Notes: generated by a model not told the origin, from the sequence alone. A stretch of 64,000 nucleotides of DNA from Calcarisporiella thermophila CBS 279.70 (GCF_041956535.1 NW_027192212.1:388970-452969), one strand, 5' to 3'. Shown: positions 11,301 through 24,534, numbered from the stretch's first letter. Translations and numbers: made by a program.

Positions 11301-12410
11301 TAAACTTCCCACAAGTGCATGGATAGGCGTTCAATTCGCCACAACTCCGTCTATTCTCCCCCATGGGTGTATGTTTAAGCGCAAATAAGGAGCGCTCTAG
11401 TGATATGGGGCTAATAAGTGGCTTTCTCCCTTGCTCTATCTTCGCCGGGTCGGGAGGGAGGGTCTGAGGTTGGCTTGCTTCCTGTGATTAGCAAAACTCC
11501 TTTCCTCTTCTATTGATCTCGTAGTATCTTTCCGGATTCCCGGCTCTTGAGAATAGAGCTTCTTACCCAAGGCATAGATGGTGCATGTTTATATCTTTAC
11601 ATAGGCCAATGGCCTTTCTTTTTTTCAAGCACAGATCGATAATTCCCTATGCTTAAGCGCTTTTCGCTGTTCTGCGTGTGTGTTTTCTCCCTTGGACGCA
11701 AAGGATTTTTAATCTATAACATTTTGGTGGAGAGTTTCAATAGGGAATTGTGCTCCTGTTCCACACGGCTCAAACAATAAAGATGCGGTGACGTATTCAA
11801 ATGTGTGACTTTTATGAGGCTCTCAAATGATTGTCATCCACTCTTATGGAATCCGCCCGGTCTGGTTTTCTCCAAAAGCCTTTGTTCCCTTGTTATCAAT
11901 CCAATTCCCAATTTTTCTGTTCTCATCATTACCCCCTTATTCTCGATTCTGATCAATACATTGCTGCCTTACTGCCAACATTTTAAGCTTCTGGAACTGC
12001 GCGTCTTCTTTTCCAATTCAGGTAAATTTTCTGATGGATATCTCTGCGATCATCTCTATGTGACATTTCGTCCTTCTTGTGTTGTTCAATGGGTCATGTT
12101 TATGATGCATTAATCAGTGAAAAAATATAGAAGGAATTGGTTGTGGACTCTTTTGTTTTTTTCTACTTTGCATTTTTTTCATTTCCCCTTCCCCTTTTGT
12201 TTGAATTCCCTGGTTCAACCTTGAACTTGTTTTTCACCCATTCTATTCCCTCCTATTATTCTTCTTTCTGTATGGTTGTTGTTATTATTTCATGGGCACT
12301 AGTTCTACTATGATGTTCAACATGGGTGCATTATTTATTTGAAATTCAGTGCATCACAACGATTCAAAATGCAACAAATAACGCTAAACATCCCTTTTTA
12401 TTTTAGAATA

Positions 12411-13995
12411 ATGCATCGCGGTAGATTTAACCCAAACGTGAGTGGTTCAGGCATCAATGGTCGCATGGATAGCCCCAAATCGGTTACAGTGGTGGCCAGT
12501 GAGCCGCGAACTGGTCAATCCCATGAGCTCTCCTATACCGTCATCAAGGTCATCGGGAGTGGATCATTTGGCACGGTATATTATGCCAAGCTATCCAATA
12601 CGGGAGAGGAAGTGGCGATTAAGAAAGTGTTCCAGGATAAGCGGTTCAAGGTATAGTGGATTTTCGTATGGATCATGGCGGGTTTTTGGAATAGGAGTTA
12701 ACGGAGTGTCTGGTGTTGGGCTTTAGAATCGCGAGCTTCAAATAATGCAAGTTCTTTCTCATACTAACATCACTTCATTAAAGTATTACTTTTACACAAA
12801 TGGAGACAAAGTAATTGCCTTGAATATGGGCCTCGTGATGGAGCTGGGAAATACTAATATAGACCATTCTGTTATTAGGGCGACGTATACCTTAACCTAG
12901 TACTTCAGTACGTGCCGCAGACCGTCTACCGTGCAAGTCGTGATTATGCAAAGATAAAGCAGCCAATGCCTATGATTTTTATCAAGCTCTACACCTATCA
13001 AATGCTACGTTCCCTGGCCTACATCCATGCCATGGGCATATGCCACCGCGACATCAAACCGCAGAATCTCCTGGTGAATCCCGCGACCGGGGTGCTCAAG
13101 CTGTGTGATTTTGGAAGGTAAAGTTGGTCAAATAGCTATTCGGTGGTTTCTCCTGTACTTAGTGTTTCCTCTCTCCCCCTTATCTTTTCTCTTCCGCTTC
13201 GCCTAGTGCTAAGGTCCTTGTTCCTGGTGAACCTAATGTCTCCTATATCTGCTCGCGTTACTATCGGGCGCCAGAGTTGATTTTTGGCGCGACCAATTAT
13301 ACCACCAGCATTGACCTATGGTCGGCAGGGTGTGTCATGGCGGAATTGATGCTCGGTCAACCGATCTTCCCTGGAGAAAGCGGTATCGACCAGCTCGTGG
13401 AGATCATTAAGGTGTTGGGAACCCCAACCAAGGAGCAAATTCGCACGATGAATCCAAACTATATGGAGCATCGTTTTCCGCAGATTAAACCCCATCCACT
13501 TAGCAAAGTAAGCGCTTCTATCCATGCTTGTTTCGTGGCTTTAGGTTTTCTAATCTTTCATTCGTGACCACTTCACCTCCTCTCTCCCCACTTCCCCTTC
13601 CACTTTAGATCTTCCGCAGTCGAACTCCTCCCGAAGCCATGGATCTGCTCTCCAATCTTTTGATCTACACTCCTCAACAGCGCTTGACCGCCATCGAAGC
13701 AATGTGCCATTCATTTTTTGATGAGCTACGTCAGCCAGAGACAAGACTGCCTAATGGGGCAGAATTACCACTCCTGTTTGATTTTTCAGAATTCGGTACG
13801 TCATCTCTATTGCTTCATTGCACGAAGAGAAATTTGAGTTAACCGGGCTTTTGTTGTCTAGAATTATCGATCCGACCCGACCTAATACACCGGTTGGTGC
13901 CTCCACATGCACAACCGGCGTTATTGGCCCGTGGAATTGATGTGAATCGATTCACTCCATTGTCGATCAATCAAATGGACCGAATGGAAACATAG
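12411..13995 (+). CDS. GSK3: Glycogen synthase kinase-3 family kinase, 6 coding exons
   Basis: Exons 12411-12650, 12727-12810, 12879-13117, 13207-13507, 13609-13795, 13862-13995. Motifs [58 protein letters not shown]. Probable 5' UTR intron 12022-12406. Confidence 0.96.
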
Positions 13996-14448: not shown

Positions 14449-15090
14449 TCATCGGTTTCTTCCCGCAAAACTGGATCGCCTACTATCATACTTGTGGTAG
14501 TCCCCCCCGCCCTTTCCCGTCATCAGGGAGGAGGCTGGCATCAGCGCGATATCCAGATAGTCGCCGGCCAAAAACTTCAGGTCCCCCAGGGTCTTTTTGC
14601 CCTCTTCCGGGTGGCGATTCTCGGCCGAAAACTGGGCGAGATTTCGTGCCGTGTGCCGTCCCGTAACATGATCCTGATACACGTGCAGAAATGACAGAGT
14701 GATTCCTGGCCGATTCATCTCCGGGAGGATATTCCGAACCAGTCCAAGAATTTCTTCCAGCGTGGCATCCTTCCAAGTGTAGATTCGCAATTCATCCGAA
14801 GCAGGTAGGCGCATGGAGTCGAAATCCTCGATACGGTGATGACTACCGATGCGAAAAAATATACATAGTAAGAAGGGGGTGATCTGTGCGGTGAAAAACA
14901 CGATTTGAGTTAGATCGGCTCGTATTTTTTGTTTTAGAGATCGTTTGTGGAATCCTGTCGAGGAGGGCTATTATCATTGAAAATACACCCCGCCTGATTG
15001 CGGGATGCATCTGGTGATCCATACCTTGGTTCTGTCTATCTTGACTAGTTCTTTTTCAGCACGCGCTTGATTTGACACCCCCGCCGACAT
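14449..15090 (-). CDS. SAP18: Sin3-associated polypeptide 18 (HDAC/ASAP complex)
   Basis: Exons 15090-15025 and 14883-14449. Motifs IDRTK|ITPFLL..F, HH..EDF, ELRIYTWKDATLEE, KTLGDLKFLAGDYLDIA. Confidence 0.92.
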
Positions 15091-15520: not shown

Positions 15521-18500
15521 ATGCCCAGCAACGAAATCGTGCCTGCATTCAACCAAAGGATCATCGCCCCCTATGTATCCAAATTCGTGCGTCAGCTGCA
15601 TGCTGACGACGAATCTATCTCTGTTCCTTATAGCCAGAAGGTGTTTGGAGCTCTGGTAATGGTGGATATAGTCGGTAAGAGATCAATGCACTTCCTCCTT
15701 GAACCCTTCCCCTCGCCTTGGTCTTTTGTGTTCATGTATTAACGTTCTCTGATCTAATGCTAATGTGATCCATGAATAGGGTTCAGTAAGGTAGGAGAGA
15801 GACGCGAATTAGTTCCGGTGCATCGGACATGGTTTTCATTGTTTTATTCTGTATAGATGACAAGCGTTGCAAATGAGCTCGGCCCATTGGGAGCAGAAAT
15901 TATAAGCACCGAGGTTGGGGAGTATTACTCAGAGGTAATTGGGGTGTTTTGATATTGCCTTCGAAATGGTGATTTTAATTTGACCCCGAACCTTGATTAG
16001 GCTATTCATATCATCGAAGCCTTTGGAGGAGATGTCGTCAAGGTAAGAGATTTGCCCACCCCCGCTCTACTTCTCGTTATTTACAATATATTGCTGCAGT
16101 TTCTCGGCGATGCTCTCCTTGTCTGCTTCTCCTCCACACTCTACGGAAATACCCCGGCCCGATTCGAGCTTGCGGATGATATAGAGCAGTCTGGTCCTGA
16201 TCGGCGGATGAAAATGGTGCTGGTAAGGCGTGCGATGGAATGCGGTATTCAGCTGCTCTCCCGCCTACGCAAACATACCATCAAGTTCTCTCCGAATCAG
16301 CGATATCGTCAACGAAAGCCGACATCGGATCTCCATTTCCACGACGTGGAGATCACGCCGCCCAGCACACCGCCTCTTGTTAACGGCCATTCTTTCCCGT
16401 CCCTGAACAAATCCCGCCTCAAATTGCTGGATTTTCGCCTTAGAGGACACGCCGACTCGAGCCTTAATCTATCCAAAGCCAAGGTGCGTCGGCGCACGGA
16501 AGTCAGTGAGCAGGAGTTCGAGCTACAGCTTCATGTTGCCGTTGCTGCGGGAGAAGTGACCCATGTCGTCATTGGTAATGTTGGCGACGAGTCTGTGCTG
16601 GGCGACCCTTCCCTTGTGTATGAGCGTTGTAGCGGCCGGCTGGAATACGCGATTTGTGGCGAAACCGTGGAGAGCCTCGGCCCGGCGCTAGCAATTGCTA
16701 AAGAAGGGGAGATGACCATGACGAAAGAGGCGTGGAAATACGCTGACCCTCACAATCTTGACCTGACCTATCAGACGCGCGACAACTGCGTCATTATTCG
16801 GCACCATCGCCAATGGCGTAATCGACCACTGGATCCGATCCTTCCGCGCGTTCGCCATGGGATCCAGCTTCCGGATGCAACCTCATATCAATTCTTCAAA
16901 TACATCAACAAGAGTGCATTATACCGACTCTGTTTGGGAGACGGAAACCCTGCGCATTTACGAGAAGTGACCATCCTGTTTATGGGCTTGCGGGGGGTGA
17001 ATGTTGCGGCGGGTCGAGGACAAGTTATTGCCCAAAAGAGTATCCAAATCCTATTTAAGGCCCTGGATAATTACGACGGTAAGCGGTTGAGTCCTAGAGC
17101 TGCTTGTTTCTTTTTGTCTTTGCACACACATTGCATTGACTGTTTTTTATCTATCAAATCGTGATACATTTTTTTAGGGTATTTGCAGCAGTTTGCAGTG
17201 GACGAAAAGGGTGCCACTTTCTTGGTGGTGTTTGGGTTTCCACCAAAATCCCACGAGAAGGACGCAACTTTTGCCACCAAAGCCGCGTTGGATATCCAGA
17301 ACGATATGCTTGAAGAGGGAATCGAGGATTTTTCGATCGCCCTCTCTACCGGAGTCATCTTTGTGGGAACAATGGGAAACGGTAAAAAGGTTGCTAATTT
17401 ATACTTGTATTGATGGTATTAACATACTCCTTTTCTCTGGGCTCGTTTCCATAGAATTCAGACGAGATCCCTCTATTGCAGGGGATGCAATCGTGCGGTG
17501 CGTACGCATGCTTGGCCTCGGCTGCAGTCAGCAATCGGTGGTGTGCGATGAGAGCACACGCAAAATGGTGGGCGCCTTGTGCGAGTTTGAAGACATGGGC
17601 GAGCGCATGCTCAAGGGAAAGAGCAAGCCGATACGAGTGTGGCGAGTGGTCCGTTTCCTTGCAACCATGGAGCGTCGCCTTTCCACCGAGAAAAGCGACT
17701 CCCTGCTCCCGCACAACCGCGAGTTCATCGGCTATCGCACAGAGATGGCTGCTGCTCGCGATTTTATTGATGGCTGGCTGGAGAAGAAGAACAACCACGT
17801 GTTGGTCCTGAGCGGGTCGACGGGCACGGGGAAAACTTACTTTGCGCAGCATATCAGGCGAACCTTGGAGGAGGCAGATCGTGGGATTGACTTCTGTGTG
17901 GGCCATGCTACTGAGGTGGAGCGCGGGACCAAGTACTACCTCTTCAGGGTGATTCTACTGCATCTGTTTGAGCTCATTGAGCAAAATCGCGTGCCGCCGA
18001 GGGCGATGAGGCGATCGCGGGGGCGCATTGGGGCGTTGGGGTCAGGTCAGGGGCCCGGGAGCGGAGGGGGATATGTGAGAGGGTCCGAGGAGGAGAGTGG
18101 AGAGGACTCGGACAGTTATCAGCTGTCACCTTCACTCTCCGCGCGGTCCTCTTCCGATCAGGAAGGCCGTTTTCCGGCCAGTCCTGTAGAGTGGTCCAAA
18201 AAACTTACCCGAGTTGCCCTATTCTCCCCCAACCCAGAGGTGTGCCGACGCACAGCCACCCTTGCCCTCAGCTGTTTGGCACGGTGCGGCGAGGATCTGA
18301 GCGTCCTGCCCCTGCTTCGGTTCGTTTTCCCCGACTTGTCCGTGGTGGAGGAGAGCCGACAGATTGCCAACTTGGATGCGCAGGGTCGAGACCTGGTATT
18401 GTCGTCGTTAATTGTGCGAATGGTAAAGTATGTGTCCGAGCATACGAATCTGATCATTTTGTGCGATGATATTCAGTGTAAGTTGCTTGCTTGTGTGTGT

Positions 18501-21025
18501 CGTGCCTGGTTTGGACGATGAATTTCAAATGATTTTCCTTCCATTTTTTTCCTCCCCTCTTTTGCAATATAGGGGCAGATTCAGCTTCCGTCAAGATGCT
18601 CGAAATGATCCACGAGAGCTGTCCTAAAGTGTTCTTATTGTTGGCTTCGAGGCCTGCGCGCGATTATCAGGTAACGCTGGTCGAAAGCATCTCAACCTCG
18701 GTTGGGCGGCACCTGGAGATCACGCTCAATGGACTTGGTCTGGGCGATATAGAACAGGTTGTCCTCCGAGAGTTTGGGCGCGGAGCTCACCAAGTCAACC
18801 GGACCATACTGGATCTGATCCAAAAACGTACCGGTGGCAATCCGCTGTTCATCAAGAACGTCGCACTGGTCCTTGGTCAGTTCAGCCATGTCACGGTATC
18901 TGGGGGGGAGCTCGTCTCCTCGAGCTCCCATCTGGACCTGGAACATATCGTCTCGGGACTCGACTACGATCGTGTGATCCGGATGCAGTTCGATCGTCTC
19001 CATCATCTCTTCCAAGAATTTCTGCGGGTGGCGAGCTGTCTCGATCAAACTTTCTCGGTGAGTGAGGTGCGGGCTGTGCTCGGAAGTAAGGGCAATCCGC
19101 TCGTGACGGACGACCCGGTCAAAATCCGCGAGCTCACCTCACAGTACGATGTGTATCGTTTTCTGAAGAGTCACGACTCCGATTCCGTCTCCAATTCCTC
19201 GTCGGAGGACTCGGACTCTGGGGTGGCCGCGCTTGCGGAGGAGACATATAGCTTTGTCCACGCAATGTACCCCTGCGTGATTTACGAGACGATTCCCTTC
19301 GAGACACGCCTACGATACCATGAGATGCTTGCGGGGTATTACGAGTCGCAGCTGTGCACGGGCAACCGTCCTCGCATGCTGACCAAGATCGCGCGCCACT
19401 ACGAGCAGACCGACATTGTGGCGAAGAAGCTGCATTACCTCGAAGAGTTGGGACATTACCACATACAGTCGTATTCTCTGCCAGAGGCCACCGAGGCCTT
19501 TGAGAAGATTGTCCGGTTGCTGGATCAAGACCCCGAGCTTGGGCGAGGCTACGACGCCGAGAAGCTGTCCGAGGTGTATCTCTCGCTTGGTGAATGCCTG
19601 TCGATGCGTACCAAGCTGATGGAGGCGGAAAGTCGACTGCTGAAGGCGTTGGAGATCATGGGCACTCCTTGGCCAAAAAATCGGTTCGAGTTCCAGGTGG
19701 CAATGTATCGGGAACGCCTTGTGCAGCGGCGCTATCGTCAGCGTCGCCCGCACCCCAAGCGCAACTCCATGTCTCAGGTTGCCCAGAATAACAAGCGCAG
19801 CGAGCGCCTGCGCAAACTAGTGCGGATCTTTGACCAACTCTACAATATCTATCACCATCTCGGCAAAGGCGACGAGACGGTGCTTAGCTGTGTGTGGGGG
19901 CTGAACTGCTGTGAGAAACTCGCTCAATACAACGAGACCCACGCGCTGTTTCTTGCCCGCCAAGCGCTCTACTGTTGGCTGAGCGACCGGCAGACGCTGA
20001 GCGCGTTCTATATCGGGCGTGCCCTGCGCATGACCAAAAAGTGCCCGGGCGCTTACACACTGACAGCCTGCGCCAACCTGTGCTTCGCAGCGGGATCGTG
20101 GCATACCGCGTGCGACCTCCTCTACTATTCGATCGAGGCGATGAAGACGATGGGGGTCGTGACCGATTGCCAGGCCTTCTACCGAGCCGTGCAGCTGCTA
20201 ATGGCAATTCGGATCTTTCAGGGCACGCTGTCGCGCCAGCCCGGAGACCAGGCCCTGCTCCGGGAGTTGGCCACCATGGGGCGAAACAACGACGACGTGG
20301 AGGCAGAGCTCTGGGTGGCTACTTTCCAGCTTGCCGATGCCATCATCACTCATCGCCTCAATGACTCGGAGCCGCTGGTCCTCCGACTCGAAGCGCAGCT
20401 GGCCCAGGAGAGAGGACTCAACCGCATAGCGTTGCACGGCGTGCTTGCCGCATACCATGCCCGGATGGGGCGTTTCAACATCACGCAGCGGCATTTCGTG
20501 CAGCTTGCCCAGCTCAAGGCCGAAATTGGGGGCTCGTCGAACACCTTCCCCATTTTTGGCCTCAACTTCTGCACCATTGCGCTCTACGACCTGGTGGAGG
20601 CGGGTGTCTTCGCCGCGCAGGCAACCGTGAAGCGCCACTTTTTCGACGAATTCGTCGGGTGGATCGTGAAGCTGAACCACATGTTCCAACAGGTCAAGTA
20701 TTGGCAGTTCACCCAGCCATGCCTGTACCTTGCCCGTGCGCTGCCTTATCTCTCGACCGGCCGCTTTGTGGAGGGCCATCTCGTGCTACACCATGGGCTG
20801 CGGGAGATGGACACCTCGCACGAAATCTTCTTTCTCAAGGCATACTATTTTGCAAAACTCGGCCGGTATACCACCTCCCAGTCGGAGCGCGAGGAATGGA
20901 CCGCACGTGCCAAGACGGAGTTCGAGAGACTGGGCATCGATAGCAACATCTACTGCGCGACCTTTGCCCCTCCCGCGGCGGAAATTAACGTGCCCGCCCC
21001 TAGCTCGCCCCCCTTCTTGTGGTAA
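15521..21025 (+). CDS. Soluble adenylyl cyclase (ADCY10/sAC)-like protein: two class III cyclase domains + STAND P-loop NTPase + TPR-like repeats, about 1647 aa
   Basis: Exons 15521-15674, 15780-15790, 15857-15934, 16001-16042, 16100-17078, 17178-17381, 17455-18477, 18573-21025 sum to 4944 nt in frame, all introns GT-AG. C1: VMVDIVGFSKMT, GGDVVKFLGDALL. C2: LREVTILF, DEKGATFLVVFGFP, STGVIFVG, LKGK. Walker A GSTGTGKT, Walker B LIILCDDIQWAD, GGNPLF. Confidence 0.9.
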
Positions 21026-21581: not shown

Positions 21582-24534
21582 CTATCGCCCCAAAGCTTCC
21601 TTAATCTTGATCCTGAAGTTGTTGAGCTCCGGGATCGAAGTCCTGTCGAATTGCCTTGAGATTTGCGACGAGACCCGCGGGACTATGTTGTCCACAACAA
21701 ATACAATATTCATCACAAGCGTCGAGGATTGATCCCGCGTTAGACTGCGTTGCGATCTGTCAGAGAGGAGGCGTTGCACATAGTTTTCCATCAAATTCTT
21801 TACGGTCGTCACGACCTTGTTATACAACTATGCATCAAAGGAGAGGAGGGAAGACGGGTTAAACAAGGCAATTGCTGGGAGAGAAAATGTGGGTGTGGGA
21901 GTTTACCCGAGGACGGCAGACGTAGCTCACTTCCTTGGCGAACTGGATGGCAATGTTGTAGAATTTGACCACGCTCGATGAAATTCTGATATCTTGCCCA
22001 AACGTTTGGGTTGACACCACCGAATAATCCTCCTTCACAAGGGCTTTTTCAACGCTCTCTACACTCCCCGCATATTGGATATCGATGACACGCTCAAGAT
22101 CTGCGAGGATCAGCTGCTCGAGGAGAAATATAAGGTCTAAACCGACAGACCTCAACTACCATAGTGATATGGAAGTCAACAACCATTATCCAAGTGACAT
22201 AGAGGTGGGATCACTCGACTACTTACCCTTGAGCATTCCTTTTCAGCTCGCTCAAGACATCTCTGAATAGTCCTTCCGCCCATATCGCCACTCGGAAGAA
22301 AAACTTGCTTTCGTAACACTACACAAAACCTCTCCACCTCCTCCTTCGCCCATTTGACAATCGGCGAGCTCATTTTCCCATCTCTGAAGAATTCTTTATA
22401 CCATTCACAAGTGGTTTTCATGAGAGAAAACGCCACCATGGCCATCTCCCCCACATAGTCCTCCACATCCCCCGTACACATCAGTTGTTTTACCCTCTGA
22501 CGGATATGCGAACTCCTAGCGGAGAGAAAAGTGTCACGAGCTTCATCGCCAAAGCCGAGCCGCAATAGCCAGACAATGGTGCTGCGAGCACGTTCACGGG
22601 AAAGCGAAAAGATAGAAAGTTGGCGGAGGATCTCACGAGAGAGACGGTGGGTAGGATCTTCGAGGGAGAGTCGGAGTTCTTCGAGTCCAGGCGATTTCGA
22701 GGGAATATTGCCCAGAAGTGTCTTAGCTGCAAGTAAAATACATGCCCAAAATTTCAGTTATTTTTTGGAGTAATTTTCACTAGCAATAACACATGGATAT
22801 TACCATGTTCGATCTGTCCCACTGCCGTCTCGAATTCGTGCTGCCCAATGGCAACTTCTAAATCATTAAGCATATCGAACCACTCAGTATCGTCTGTGGC
22901 GAGATTTCCAGAGGCCACTTTCTGCAGAAGAAAATCATCAATAGAGCTTAACTTTAATAAATAGTGAGGAAGAGCACCTTCTCCATAGATATTCTCGTTC
23001 CACGCGCGAATTTTGAGGTTGCTCTCCCTTCCATCAGGTCATCCGTCGTCCGTTTAACCATAACTAGCAAGCCTGCTTTCTCTTCCGGGCGTGTGGCCTG
23101 GTACAGAAGGGTGCTTTTTTTCCAAATTATTTTGAAAGCGTTCACTAGATCTGCGAAAGACAGGTAGGTAAATGGACTTTTGTCTTTTTTTTTTTAGCAA
23201 TAAATTTCCACTCACTTGAAGAATCCTTGATATCCTGCACCTCAATCTCACCAAGCGCCCAGCACTGTTCAGCCACCATCCGATATCTGGTTGTCTTTGC
23301 GTGCCTCTTTTTTCGTGCTGCTACAAGCAGACAGTCATTAAGTAAGATCATATGAACAGCCTGTTTAACTTGCAAAGTAACGGAGTGCAGCTCCAAAAAA
23401 TTCGGGCTCTCTCGGACAATATGACGGTCCGGATGATATGGCAGCAACTTTTGCGCTCCTTCAATTGTTTGCCACAGTGCAGCCATCTGTGCCTTCCAAA
23501 CCGAATGGATATCGGTCGTATTTTTAGTTTTCACTCCCGCTTGCTCGACAATACTCGATGGTCCTATAAATTTGATATCAGAAAACGCATACGTATTGCT
23601 TAGGTGGACGAAGATTACCAGACAACAGTGATGTTTGGTCGCTATCCTCCTTCAATGCGTCTGCGGTGCTTTTAATTTCGTCTAGCATGCTTCGTAACGT
23701 CAATAGATCGCTCTCCACACGTAAAAAAGGAAAAAGTAGAGTTAAAGATAATCGAACTGTATCCACCATAGCAGGTATCATATATGTTATAGGGGGAAAA
23801 TAAAAAAGGATATTTGAAATTTCTTTGGAAATCACTACGAATTCATTGTAGTTTTTATATACATTGCGCTGCAAGTCTCCGCCAATCAACTGTTTAGTGT
23901 CAGCAAGAGATTTGAAGAACTTCCTTACACCCTCCTCGCTAACGTCCCCAAGGGTTTTATGAATATCTATTAGAAAGGAATGTAAATACAAATGGTGGCT
24001 AAATTCAAGGTGGGTTATAGCCATACAGTCAACCGGATCGAAATGACGCGATATGAACTTATTCATATCTAACTTTGGCTCAACCGTTGGACGGGGAGGT
24101 GGAGGTTCAGCTTGAATGTGATCTCTTGCCATTGCCGCCTCTGCCACAGGTGCCCTCTCTCTCCTGGATGCATTCATAGACATTGCGGGAATAGGTGGAG
24201 GAGATTGATGTGGGGGCAACCCCTGGAATTTTGTGGTCGCATATGGTTGCGTTTGCAATGTGGATATCTGTTGATACTTTGCATTGTTCTTCGCGGGTGC
24301 ATCGAATTGCTTGTTGCCGTCCAATTGAGGAGAGTTGGAACCCGCTGCTTGTCTTAGTTTAGCCCACTTTTGACCGGCACGTTTGGCCGAAATTATAGCC
24401 GCTGGAGTGAAGTAGCGAGAGGACGAAGAGGTAGAATCGGGAGGAGGATGAGGCTCTGAAATAGTGGGAGGGGAGACTGGGGCGTCTAGAGGAAGACTTA
24501 TTTCGCGTGTCTTTTTTGTGCGATTTTGTGACAT
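21582..24534 (-). CDS. EXO84: Exocyst subunit Exo84, multi-exon
   Basis: GGDLQRNVYKNYNEFVVISKEIS (N-terminal domain), IEGAQKLLPYHPDRHIVRES..ILLNDCLLVA (PH domain), LRLGFGDEARDTFLSARS, VKWAKEEVERF, VGLDLIFLL. Internal exon boundaries not fully resolved. Confidence 0.9.

Follow-up and report, generated by a model that had tools for sequence, protein, structure and literature searches.

A 64,000-nucleotide stretch of the genome of Calcarisporiella thermophila CBS 279.70 (NW_027192212.1:388970-452969; hereafter the window, in whose numbering all coordinates are given) carries at 15521-21025, on the plus strand, a spliced gene for a large nucleotide cyclase. We conclude, with a probability of about 0.65, that this gene is the C. 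thermophila member of the ADCY10 (soluble adenylyl cyclase, sAC) type of enzyme, and that it is a conserved protein and not a diversifying receptor. The analyses below show its architecture, its homology and its single-copy status. The deposited protein VTP21DRAFT_5489 of C. thermophila (P0050, 1666 aa) shares 100% identity with the last exon and 98% with the preceding one, and it is the deposited product of the gene, identical to exon 8 and matched exactly after splicing. An earlier note, made from the DNA alone, had described tandem class III cyclase domains, a STAND (signal transduction ATPases with numerous domains) nucleoside triphosphatase (NTPase) and tetratricopeptide repeat (TPR)-like helices, and had proposed a receptor resembling the NOD-like receptors (NLRs). 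Its description of the domains was borne out; its reading of them as a receptor was not.

Relationship of the cyclase domains to ADCY10

Comparison of P0050 with the sequences in the PDB by phmmer placed human ADCY10 first (2e-12); no other class III cyclase did better than 0.005. A profile built from 28 family members matched ADCY10 at 2.2e-21 and aligned C1 and C2 in order. When residues 1-595 were modeled with AlphaFold (predicted template modelling (TM) score 0.66), human sAC structures made up the first 24 Foldseek matches (E 3.6e-25 to 5e-22, target TM 0.63-0.69, identity in the fold alignment about 16-17%), and the tandem domains of the membrane cyclase AC9 came next at ~1e-15. By profile and predicted fold, human ADCY10 is the nearest solved relative of the tandem cyclase domains. 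In the Atlas, the closest clusters bear the name 'adenylate cyclase type 10-like' and the domains Guanylate_cyc+AAA_16; we use such names as leads only. Searches with single exons failed because the domains are intron-split and divergent: Pfam scans gave weak AAA_16 and NPHP3_N matches and no cyclase, and PDB searches were blank.

The protein shares with animal ADCY10 (human sAC, PDB IDs 4CLF and 4OYA) the one-chain, colinear C1-C2 tandem and the residues Asp47, Asp99, Lys95 and Arg416 of the human enzyme. It differs from it in two disordered insertions, one of 70 residues in C1 and one of 85 residues in the NTPase, both of low complexity, rich in Ser, Pro and basic residues and with a predicted local distance difference test (pLDDT) score below 50.

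STAND NTPase and helical region

The Walker A (GSTGTGKT), Walker B (LIILCDD, followed by IQWAD) and GxP (TGGNPLF) motifs that the earlier note had read in the NTPase are present and are conserved in nearly all 28 sequences. AAA_16 scored 40.2 bits on P0050 (cut-off 32.6), and NACHT (19.2 bits, cut-off 26.7) and NB-ARC (11.3 bits, cut-off 23.5) both fell below their cut-offs. TIGR03903, which describes a bacterial kinase/cyclase-STAND fusion, matched residues 803-1135 at 7.8e-17. Downstream, residues ~1091-1646 are modeled as helix pairs with pLDDT 85-95 (mean pLDDT 77.6 for the model of residues 590-1666), in agreement with the ~550 aa of TPR-like helices anticipated there.

When this model of the C-terminal 1077 residues was compared with the PDB, the best match was the STAND-TPR protein PH0952 of Pyrococcus (PDB ID: 6MFV), followed by Avs3, Apaf-1 and MalT (PDB ID: 8BOB), together with TPR superhelices. 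Among predicted AAA_16+TPR_12 proteins, 728-855 residues were aligned with a query TM of 0.53-0.66; the best alignment spanned 855 residues (TM 0.66/0.78), and the matches include cyclase-bearing and LuxR-type proteins. The motifs, the AAA_16 score and the fold matches place the NTPase in the AAA_16/MalT-like STAND group. The outputs of its best structural matches, which are STAND-TPR regulators (PH0952, MalT, AfsR-like and LuxR-family AAA_16 proteins), are DNA-binding or unknown domains, in contrast to the tandem cyclase found here. The best reading of the STAND-TPR part, drawn from the analogy with MalT-like STAND proteins, is a putative conserved regulatory switch.

The same order of domains occurs in two other settings, as had been proposed, and the PDB, profile, fold, TIGR03903 and AAA_16+TPR_12 matches agree on both. 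Animal ADCY10 itself carries a C-terminal P-loop NTPase and a TPR-type region, and an ADCY10-like architecture is also found in Dictyostelium. The bacterial cyclase-AAA_16-TPR proteins, which include a tandem-cyclase protein of Anaerolineae (P0165) and the TIGR03903 fusion, have the same layout in a shorter chain (about 1100-1400 aa), keep the transition-state Asn discussed below, and form the outgroup to all fungal sequences. Four of them (P0134, P0145, P0165 and P0172, ~1370 aa) combine a tandem cyclase with AAA_16 and TPR, as the fungal protein does. The cyclase-AAA_16-TPR layout is also that of the Rv0386 class of Mycobacterium tuberculosis.

Copy number, phylogeny and conservation

Searches of the 28 Mb genome with the protein and with a family-specific NTPase-TPR profile each returned this locus alone. 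The Pfam cyclase model found two other genes, both encoding leucine-rich repeat (LRR), protein phosphatase 2C (PP2C) and cyclase domains, i.e., Cyr1-type enzymes (Table 1), which brings the class III cyclase genes of C. thermophila to at least three. The Cyr1-type proteins are class III cyclases of the same genome as well, but they lie on other contigs and join LRR-PP2C to a single C-terminal catalytic domain; a Pfam scan of P0050 detected no LRR or PP2C, and the separation from Cyr1 that had been claimed for this gene stands.

Used as the query of a word search, the 809-aa last exon retrieved Mucoromycota proteins at 39-43% identity, and a 1107-aa match from Endogone in turn retrieved ~40 full-length homologues of 1528-1755 aa. 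An exhaustive profile search gave 19,314 representatives at E<=0.001, of which 414 reached E<=1e-30. The names among its best 150 rows run from Mucoromycotina through Mortierellomycotina to many chytrids, with bacterial tandem-cyclase proteins too, and no sequence in those 150 carries two motifs of the human sAC sequence. Starting from the chytrid protein P0167, a word search returned chytrid, Blastocladiella and prokaryote-type metagenomic proteins and no animal ADCY10. No name from Dikarya occurs among the ~70 named matches, which suggests that the ADCY10-like family is absent from that group. Public records already call relatives in Mortierella and chytrids 'Adenylate cyclase type 10' and others 'Guanylate cyclase domain-containing protein', and the suggestion that the gene represents an undescribed system is not supported.

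With the bacterial group as its root, a maximum-likelihood tree built from 39 sequences branches in the order bacteria, chytrids, and then Mortierellomycotina with a group of Calcarisporiella, Bifiguratus, Endogone and Mucorales, which is the order of the species tree. Mucorales, Mortierellomycotina and the union of the two each have support of 98-100, and the Calcarisporiella protein is sister to the other Mucoromycotina. These data show vertical descent across the early-diverging fungi, in which the gene is an old one. Strong conservation, and constraint along the whole length, are likewise evident: compared with its homologues, P0050 has an identity of 49% in C2, of 43-45% in the NTPase, of 44% in the arm and, across Mucoromycotina, of 41-50% in the helical repeats, and the mean column identity is 66% for the NTPase and helical part versus 51% for the cyclase part. 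Identity drops to 17-18% in the two disordered insertions, and throughout Mucoromycotina these sites hold insertions of variable length.

The chytrid Chytridiales sp. JEL 0842 stands out for an expanded family of more than a dozen copies (P0068, P0077, P0085, P0088, P0094, P0099, P0141, P0167, P0193 and P0213-P0218), two of them named 'Adenylate cyclase type 10'. Some of the copies share contigs (locus tags HDV05_003187/003190/003192 and HDV05_007934/007936/007938), and some members are fused into proteins of 2400-3400 aa. This expansion is a more receptor-like pattern than any seen in Mucoromycota.

Active site and proposed function

The active site was mapped by alignment onto human sAC, and a wider alignment added chytrid and bacterial relatives. 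Asp49 and Asp118 (sAC Asp47 and Asp99), Lys95 and Arg526 (sAC Arg416) are kept and are invariant in the family. Both metal-binding Asp residues lie on C1; the equivalent position of C2 is Gly or Ser, so C2 has no metal Asp. We propose that the protein is a cytosolic class III nucleotidyl cyclase in which one chain joins the catalytic module to a STAND NTPase of the AAA_16 type and to a domain of TPR-like helices. C1 would provide the two metal-binding Asp residues, and C2 the substrate side, of one active site, and the product would be a cyclic nucleotide, most likely cyclic AMP (cAMP). The STAND module may control output through its nucleotide state and its self-association, and the helical domain may offer a conserved surface for regulation or for binding of a ligand or partner. 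That a STAND-type switch gates the cyclase is a reasonable inference from the family, and the same inference holds for ADCY10 itself. The enzyme would then constitute a housekeeping signaling input beside the two Cyr1-type cyclases, and not a variable receptor.

Several observations weigh against this assignment. Within the C2 substrate and transition-state set of sAC (Lys334, Thr405, Asn412 and Arg416), Arg alone is retained: the adenine-selecting Lys334 is replaced by Gln445, an invariant Gln in the family; Thr405 corresponds to Ser515, and to Ala or Gly in other members; and the transition-state Asn412 corresponds to Val522, with Val or Ile in the relatives from Mucoromycotina and Mortierellomycotina. 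The bicarbonate-linked Arg176 of sAC is replaced by Gly308 here and by Glu in the family consensus. On P0050 and on three homologues alike, the Pfam model Guanylate_cyc failed to attain E<=1, and the catalytic domains are therefore divergent. Of the three Pfam families whose detection the earlier note had looked to, AAA_16 exceeded its cut-off, and Guanylate_cyc and the TPR models (not significant on P0050 or on the exon translations) did not appear. Moreover, the likeness of the C-terminal ~1000 residues to those of animal ADCY10 is one of layout, and the putative enzyme activity and the single-transcript structure are predictions from sequence.

The change at the transition-state position is restricted to one part of the family. 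In the wider alignment, Val or Ile occupies the Asn position in every sampled Mucoromycotina and Mortierellomycotina sequence and only in these, and the Asn is retained in nearly all sampled chytrid and all sampled bacterial relatives. The four bacterial proteins P0134, P0145, P0165 and P0172 have the transition-state Asn in 4/4 cases and the canonical Asn-Lys at the purine position in 3/4, and possibly give a picture of the ancestral active site. Gln at the adenine-Lys position also occurs in some bacterial relatives, and Rv0386 uses Gln/Asn. Given Val in place of the transition-state Asn and Gln in place of the adenine Lys, the reaction probably runs slowly or in an atypical way. Of three options, an adenylyl cyclase of this slow or atypical kind appears the most likely; the others are an enzyme with a different substrate and a pseudo-enzyme.

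Alternative explanations

The pseudo-enzyme option deserves to be spelled out. The C1-C2 pair of the sampled Mucoromycotina and Mortierellomycotina may have lost efficient catalysis and bind nucleotide or metal as a regulatory input, leaving the STAND-TPR part as an ATP-driven scaffold. The uniform replacement of Asn in these two groups, the Gln at the adenine position, the lost bicarbonate Arg and the higher conservation of the NTPase and helical part than of the cyclase part all speak for it. However, the metal Asp pair, Lys95, the phosphate loop GFS and Arg526 are invariant or nearly so, a pattern not easily accounted for unless nucleotide chemistry takes place. Mammalian cyclases mutated at the Asn retain reduced activity, and Rv1900c of M. 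tuberculosis lacks the transition-state Asn and yet is active. We consider this explanation unlikely. A related proposal takes the Val/Ile substitution and the purine-site Gln as marks of changed chemistry, so that the module would produce a signal other than cAMP, or would be a nucleotide-sensing pseudo-cyclase, gated by the STAND ATPase on a ligand read by the TPRs; it seems to us a rather improbable one.

We also weighed whether the protein could be a bicarbonate- or CO2-sensing cyclase like mammalian sAC, in which case the Mucor orthologues would be the cyclase of the route from CO2 and bicarbonate through cAMP and protein kinase A (PKA) to yeast growth. Its nearest solved relative is a bicarbonate sensor, and Lys95, one of the two residues of the bicarbonate site (Lys95 and Arg176), is invariant. 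Arg176, which links bicarbonate to the active site of sAC, is lost, and the position of Thr405 is variable (Ser/Ala/Gly). Because the Arg176 equivalent is missing, the canonical bicarbonate switch of sAC is probably not used, and we regard the canonical mechanism as unlikely. The Cyr1-type catalytic domains of other fungi are themselves responsive to bicarbonate. In favor of the idea, studies in Mucor, in which high CO2 or bicarbonate leads to yeast growth, invoke a bicarbonate-activated adenylyl cyclase whose gene is not named (PMC3764228, PMC6989107), and another Mucor study suggests a further cyclase gene besides cyr1 (PMC9226013). Taken together, we hold a bicarbonate sensor of the mammalian kind to be quite unlikely.

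The receptor proposed in the earlier note would bind a non-self or symbiont ligand through its TPRs, oligomerize through its NTPase and release an alarm nucleotide from its cyclase. The layout of effector, NOD (nucleotide-binding oligomerization domain) and repeats is real, and it is shared with the fungal NLR-like proteins, which have an N-terminal effector, a central STAND NTPase and C-terminal repeats (PMC4986451; Dyrka et al. 2014). That survey detected no canonical NACHT or NB-ARC NLRs in either Mucorales or chytrids, so another STAND protein could fill the role; cyclase is not among its named effector domains (the word does not occur). The many copies in Chytridiales sp. JEL 0842, some contig-adjacent, fit such a role. 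The C. thermophila gene, in contrast to those NLR-like proteins, has an AAA_16/MalT-like NTPase, with NACHT and NB-ARC both under their cut-offs, and shows neither expansion nor repeat variability: it is single copy, its orthologues track the species tree, and conservation of the proposed sensor equals that of C2 (41-50% versus 49%). The coding region contains no tandem DNA repeats, the neighboring genes are housekeeping ones, and a search of a defence-system library gave no meaningful match, just an 18.6-bit P-loop. The idea meets none of the features that separate a receptor from a conserved enzyme, and the single-copy, conserved enzyme that the earlier note itself had set against its receptor model is, in that part, what copy number, tree and conservation describe. 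A receptor of this type is very improbable here, and a conserved ADCY10-type cyclase remains our preferred assignment.

Relation to cyclic nucleotide signaling in fungi

Work on fungal cAMP centers on the Cyr1-type cyclase, and our full-text literature search found no paper on an sAC-type enzyme in fungi. What is already known is the architecture, in animals and bacteria, and the name ADCY10, which relatives have received from automated pipelines. The present data indicate that Mucoromycotina, Mortierellomycotina and chytrids retain a vertically inherited ADCY10-type cyclase beside Cyr1. The Mucor orthologues (e.g., P0019 and P0020) would be concrete candidates for the cyclase of the CO2/bicarbonate-cAMP-PKA route. 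The function of the large C-terminal region of ADCY10 is still poorly understood, and the clade-specific loss of a catalytic Asn amid otherwise strict conservation offers a natural experiment on class III cyclases and STAND modules. If the chemistry has indeed changed, the protein would define a Cyr1-independent second-messenger pathway of early-diverging fungi, of which we found no description in fungi.

Gene model and neighboring genes

The gene runs from an ATG at 15521 to a stop codon at 21023-21025 as long open stretches in alternating frames with short GT..AG introns between them (Table 1). Removal of six introns, all GT..AG and 66-105 nt long, reproduces P0050 exactly and corresponds to the deposited 7-exon model. 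When a seventh, in-frame intron is also removed, eight exons and a protein of 1647 aa with 0 internal stops are obtained, which is the single spliced open reading frame that had been claimed for this locus. We prefer the 8-exon model because the 19 extra residues are missing from the homologues (27 of the 27 aligned), break the C1 motif and have low confidence (pLDDT below 50 in the AlphaFold model); splicing them out rejoins GGDVVK-FLGDA, which compares with GGDILK-FAGDA, the metal-binding motif of C1 in sAC. On homology and splice signals, the 1647-aa model is thus the probable better one. The full-length searches, folds and alignments reported above were made with P0050, i.e., with the 19-residue stretch of the retained intron.

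The VD(I/V)VGFS motif that spans the region of the 11-nt microexon is conserved among homologues. Many deposited homologue models begin at MVDVVGFS or further in, a sign that annotation of the family often overlooks one or more exons at the start of the gene.

Table 1. Features of the cyclase gene, its neighbors and the Cyr1-type genes of the genome (window coordinates, except for the Cyr1-type genes)
Feature	Position	Strand	Content	Basis
Exon 1	15521..15674	+	start codon; first C1 strand; metal-binding Asp49 (15665-15667; sAC Asp47)	exact match to P0050; ADCY10 alignment
Exon 2	15780..15790	+	11-nt microexon; completes the phosphate-binding loop G-F-S-K that follows the metal Asp	needed for P0050; GT..AG flanks
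Exon 3	15857..15934	+	C1 helix	P0050 match; splice sites
Exon 4	16001..16042	+	terminal GGDVVK; Lys95 (16040-16042; sAC Lys95)	ADCY10 and homologue alignments
In-frame intron	16043..16099	+	57 nt, GTAAGA..CTGCAG; encodes the 19 residues retained in the deposited 1666-aa model	
Exon 5	16100..17078	+	remaining C1; metal-binding Asp118 (16109-16111; sAC Asp99); disordered insertion 16298-16507; linker; C2 start	
Exon 6	17178..17381	+	C2 core; Gln445 (17189-17191) at the position of adenine-binding sAC Lys334	
Exon 7	17455..18477	+	C2 end with Ser515, Val522 (17493-17495; sAC Asn412 position) and Arg526 (sAC Arg416); then NTPase core	
Exon 7, NTPase part		+	Walker A 17814-17837; low-complexity insert 18000-18254; Walker B 18450-18470	
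Exon 8	18573..21025	+	NTPase end; arm/winged helix with GxP (18833-18847); TPR-like helical repeats (19295-20962); stop	
Catalytic module	15626..17663	+	C1 15626-16807, C2 16955-17663, introns counted in	
Regulatory module	17715..20962	+	AAA_16-type STAND NTPase 17715-18724; arm/winged helix 18725-19294; helical repeats 19295-20962	
SAP18	14449-14901	-	divergent; common upstream region with the cyclase gene	
Exo84	21859-24534	-	convergent	
Protein kinase	12339-12656	+	exon fragment	
Cyr1-type gene 1	contig G000:C15, L009:5962-9999		LRR, PP2C, cyclase	
Cyr1-type gene 2	contig G000:C24, L010:5923-9981	minus	LRR, PP2C, cyclase	

A reading of the locus as a gene cluster was rejected, as the neighbors SAP18 and Exo84 are housekeeping genes with no functional grouping with the cyclase. 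SAP18 lies upstream and shares its upstream region with the cyclase gene, Exo84 converges on it from downstream, and a fragment of a protein kinase exon is found beyond SAP18.

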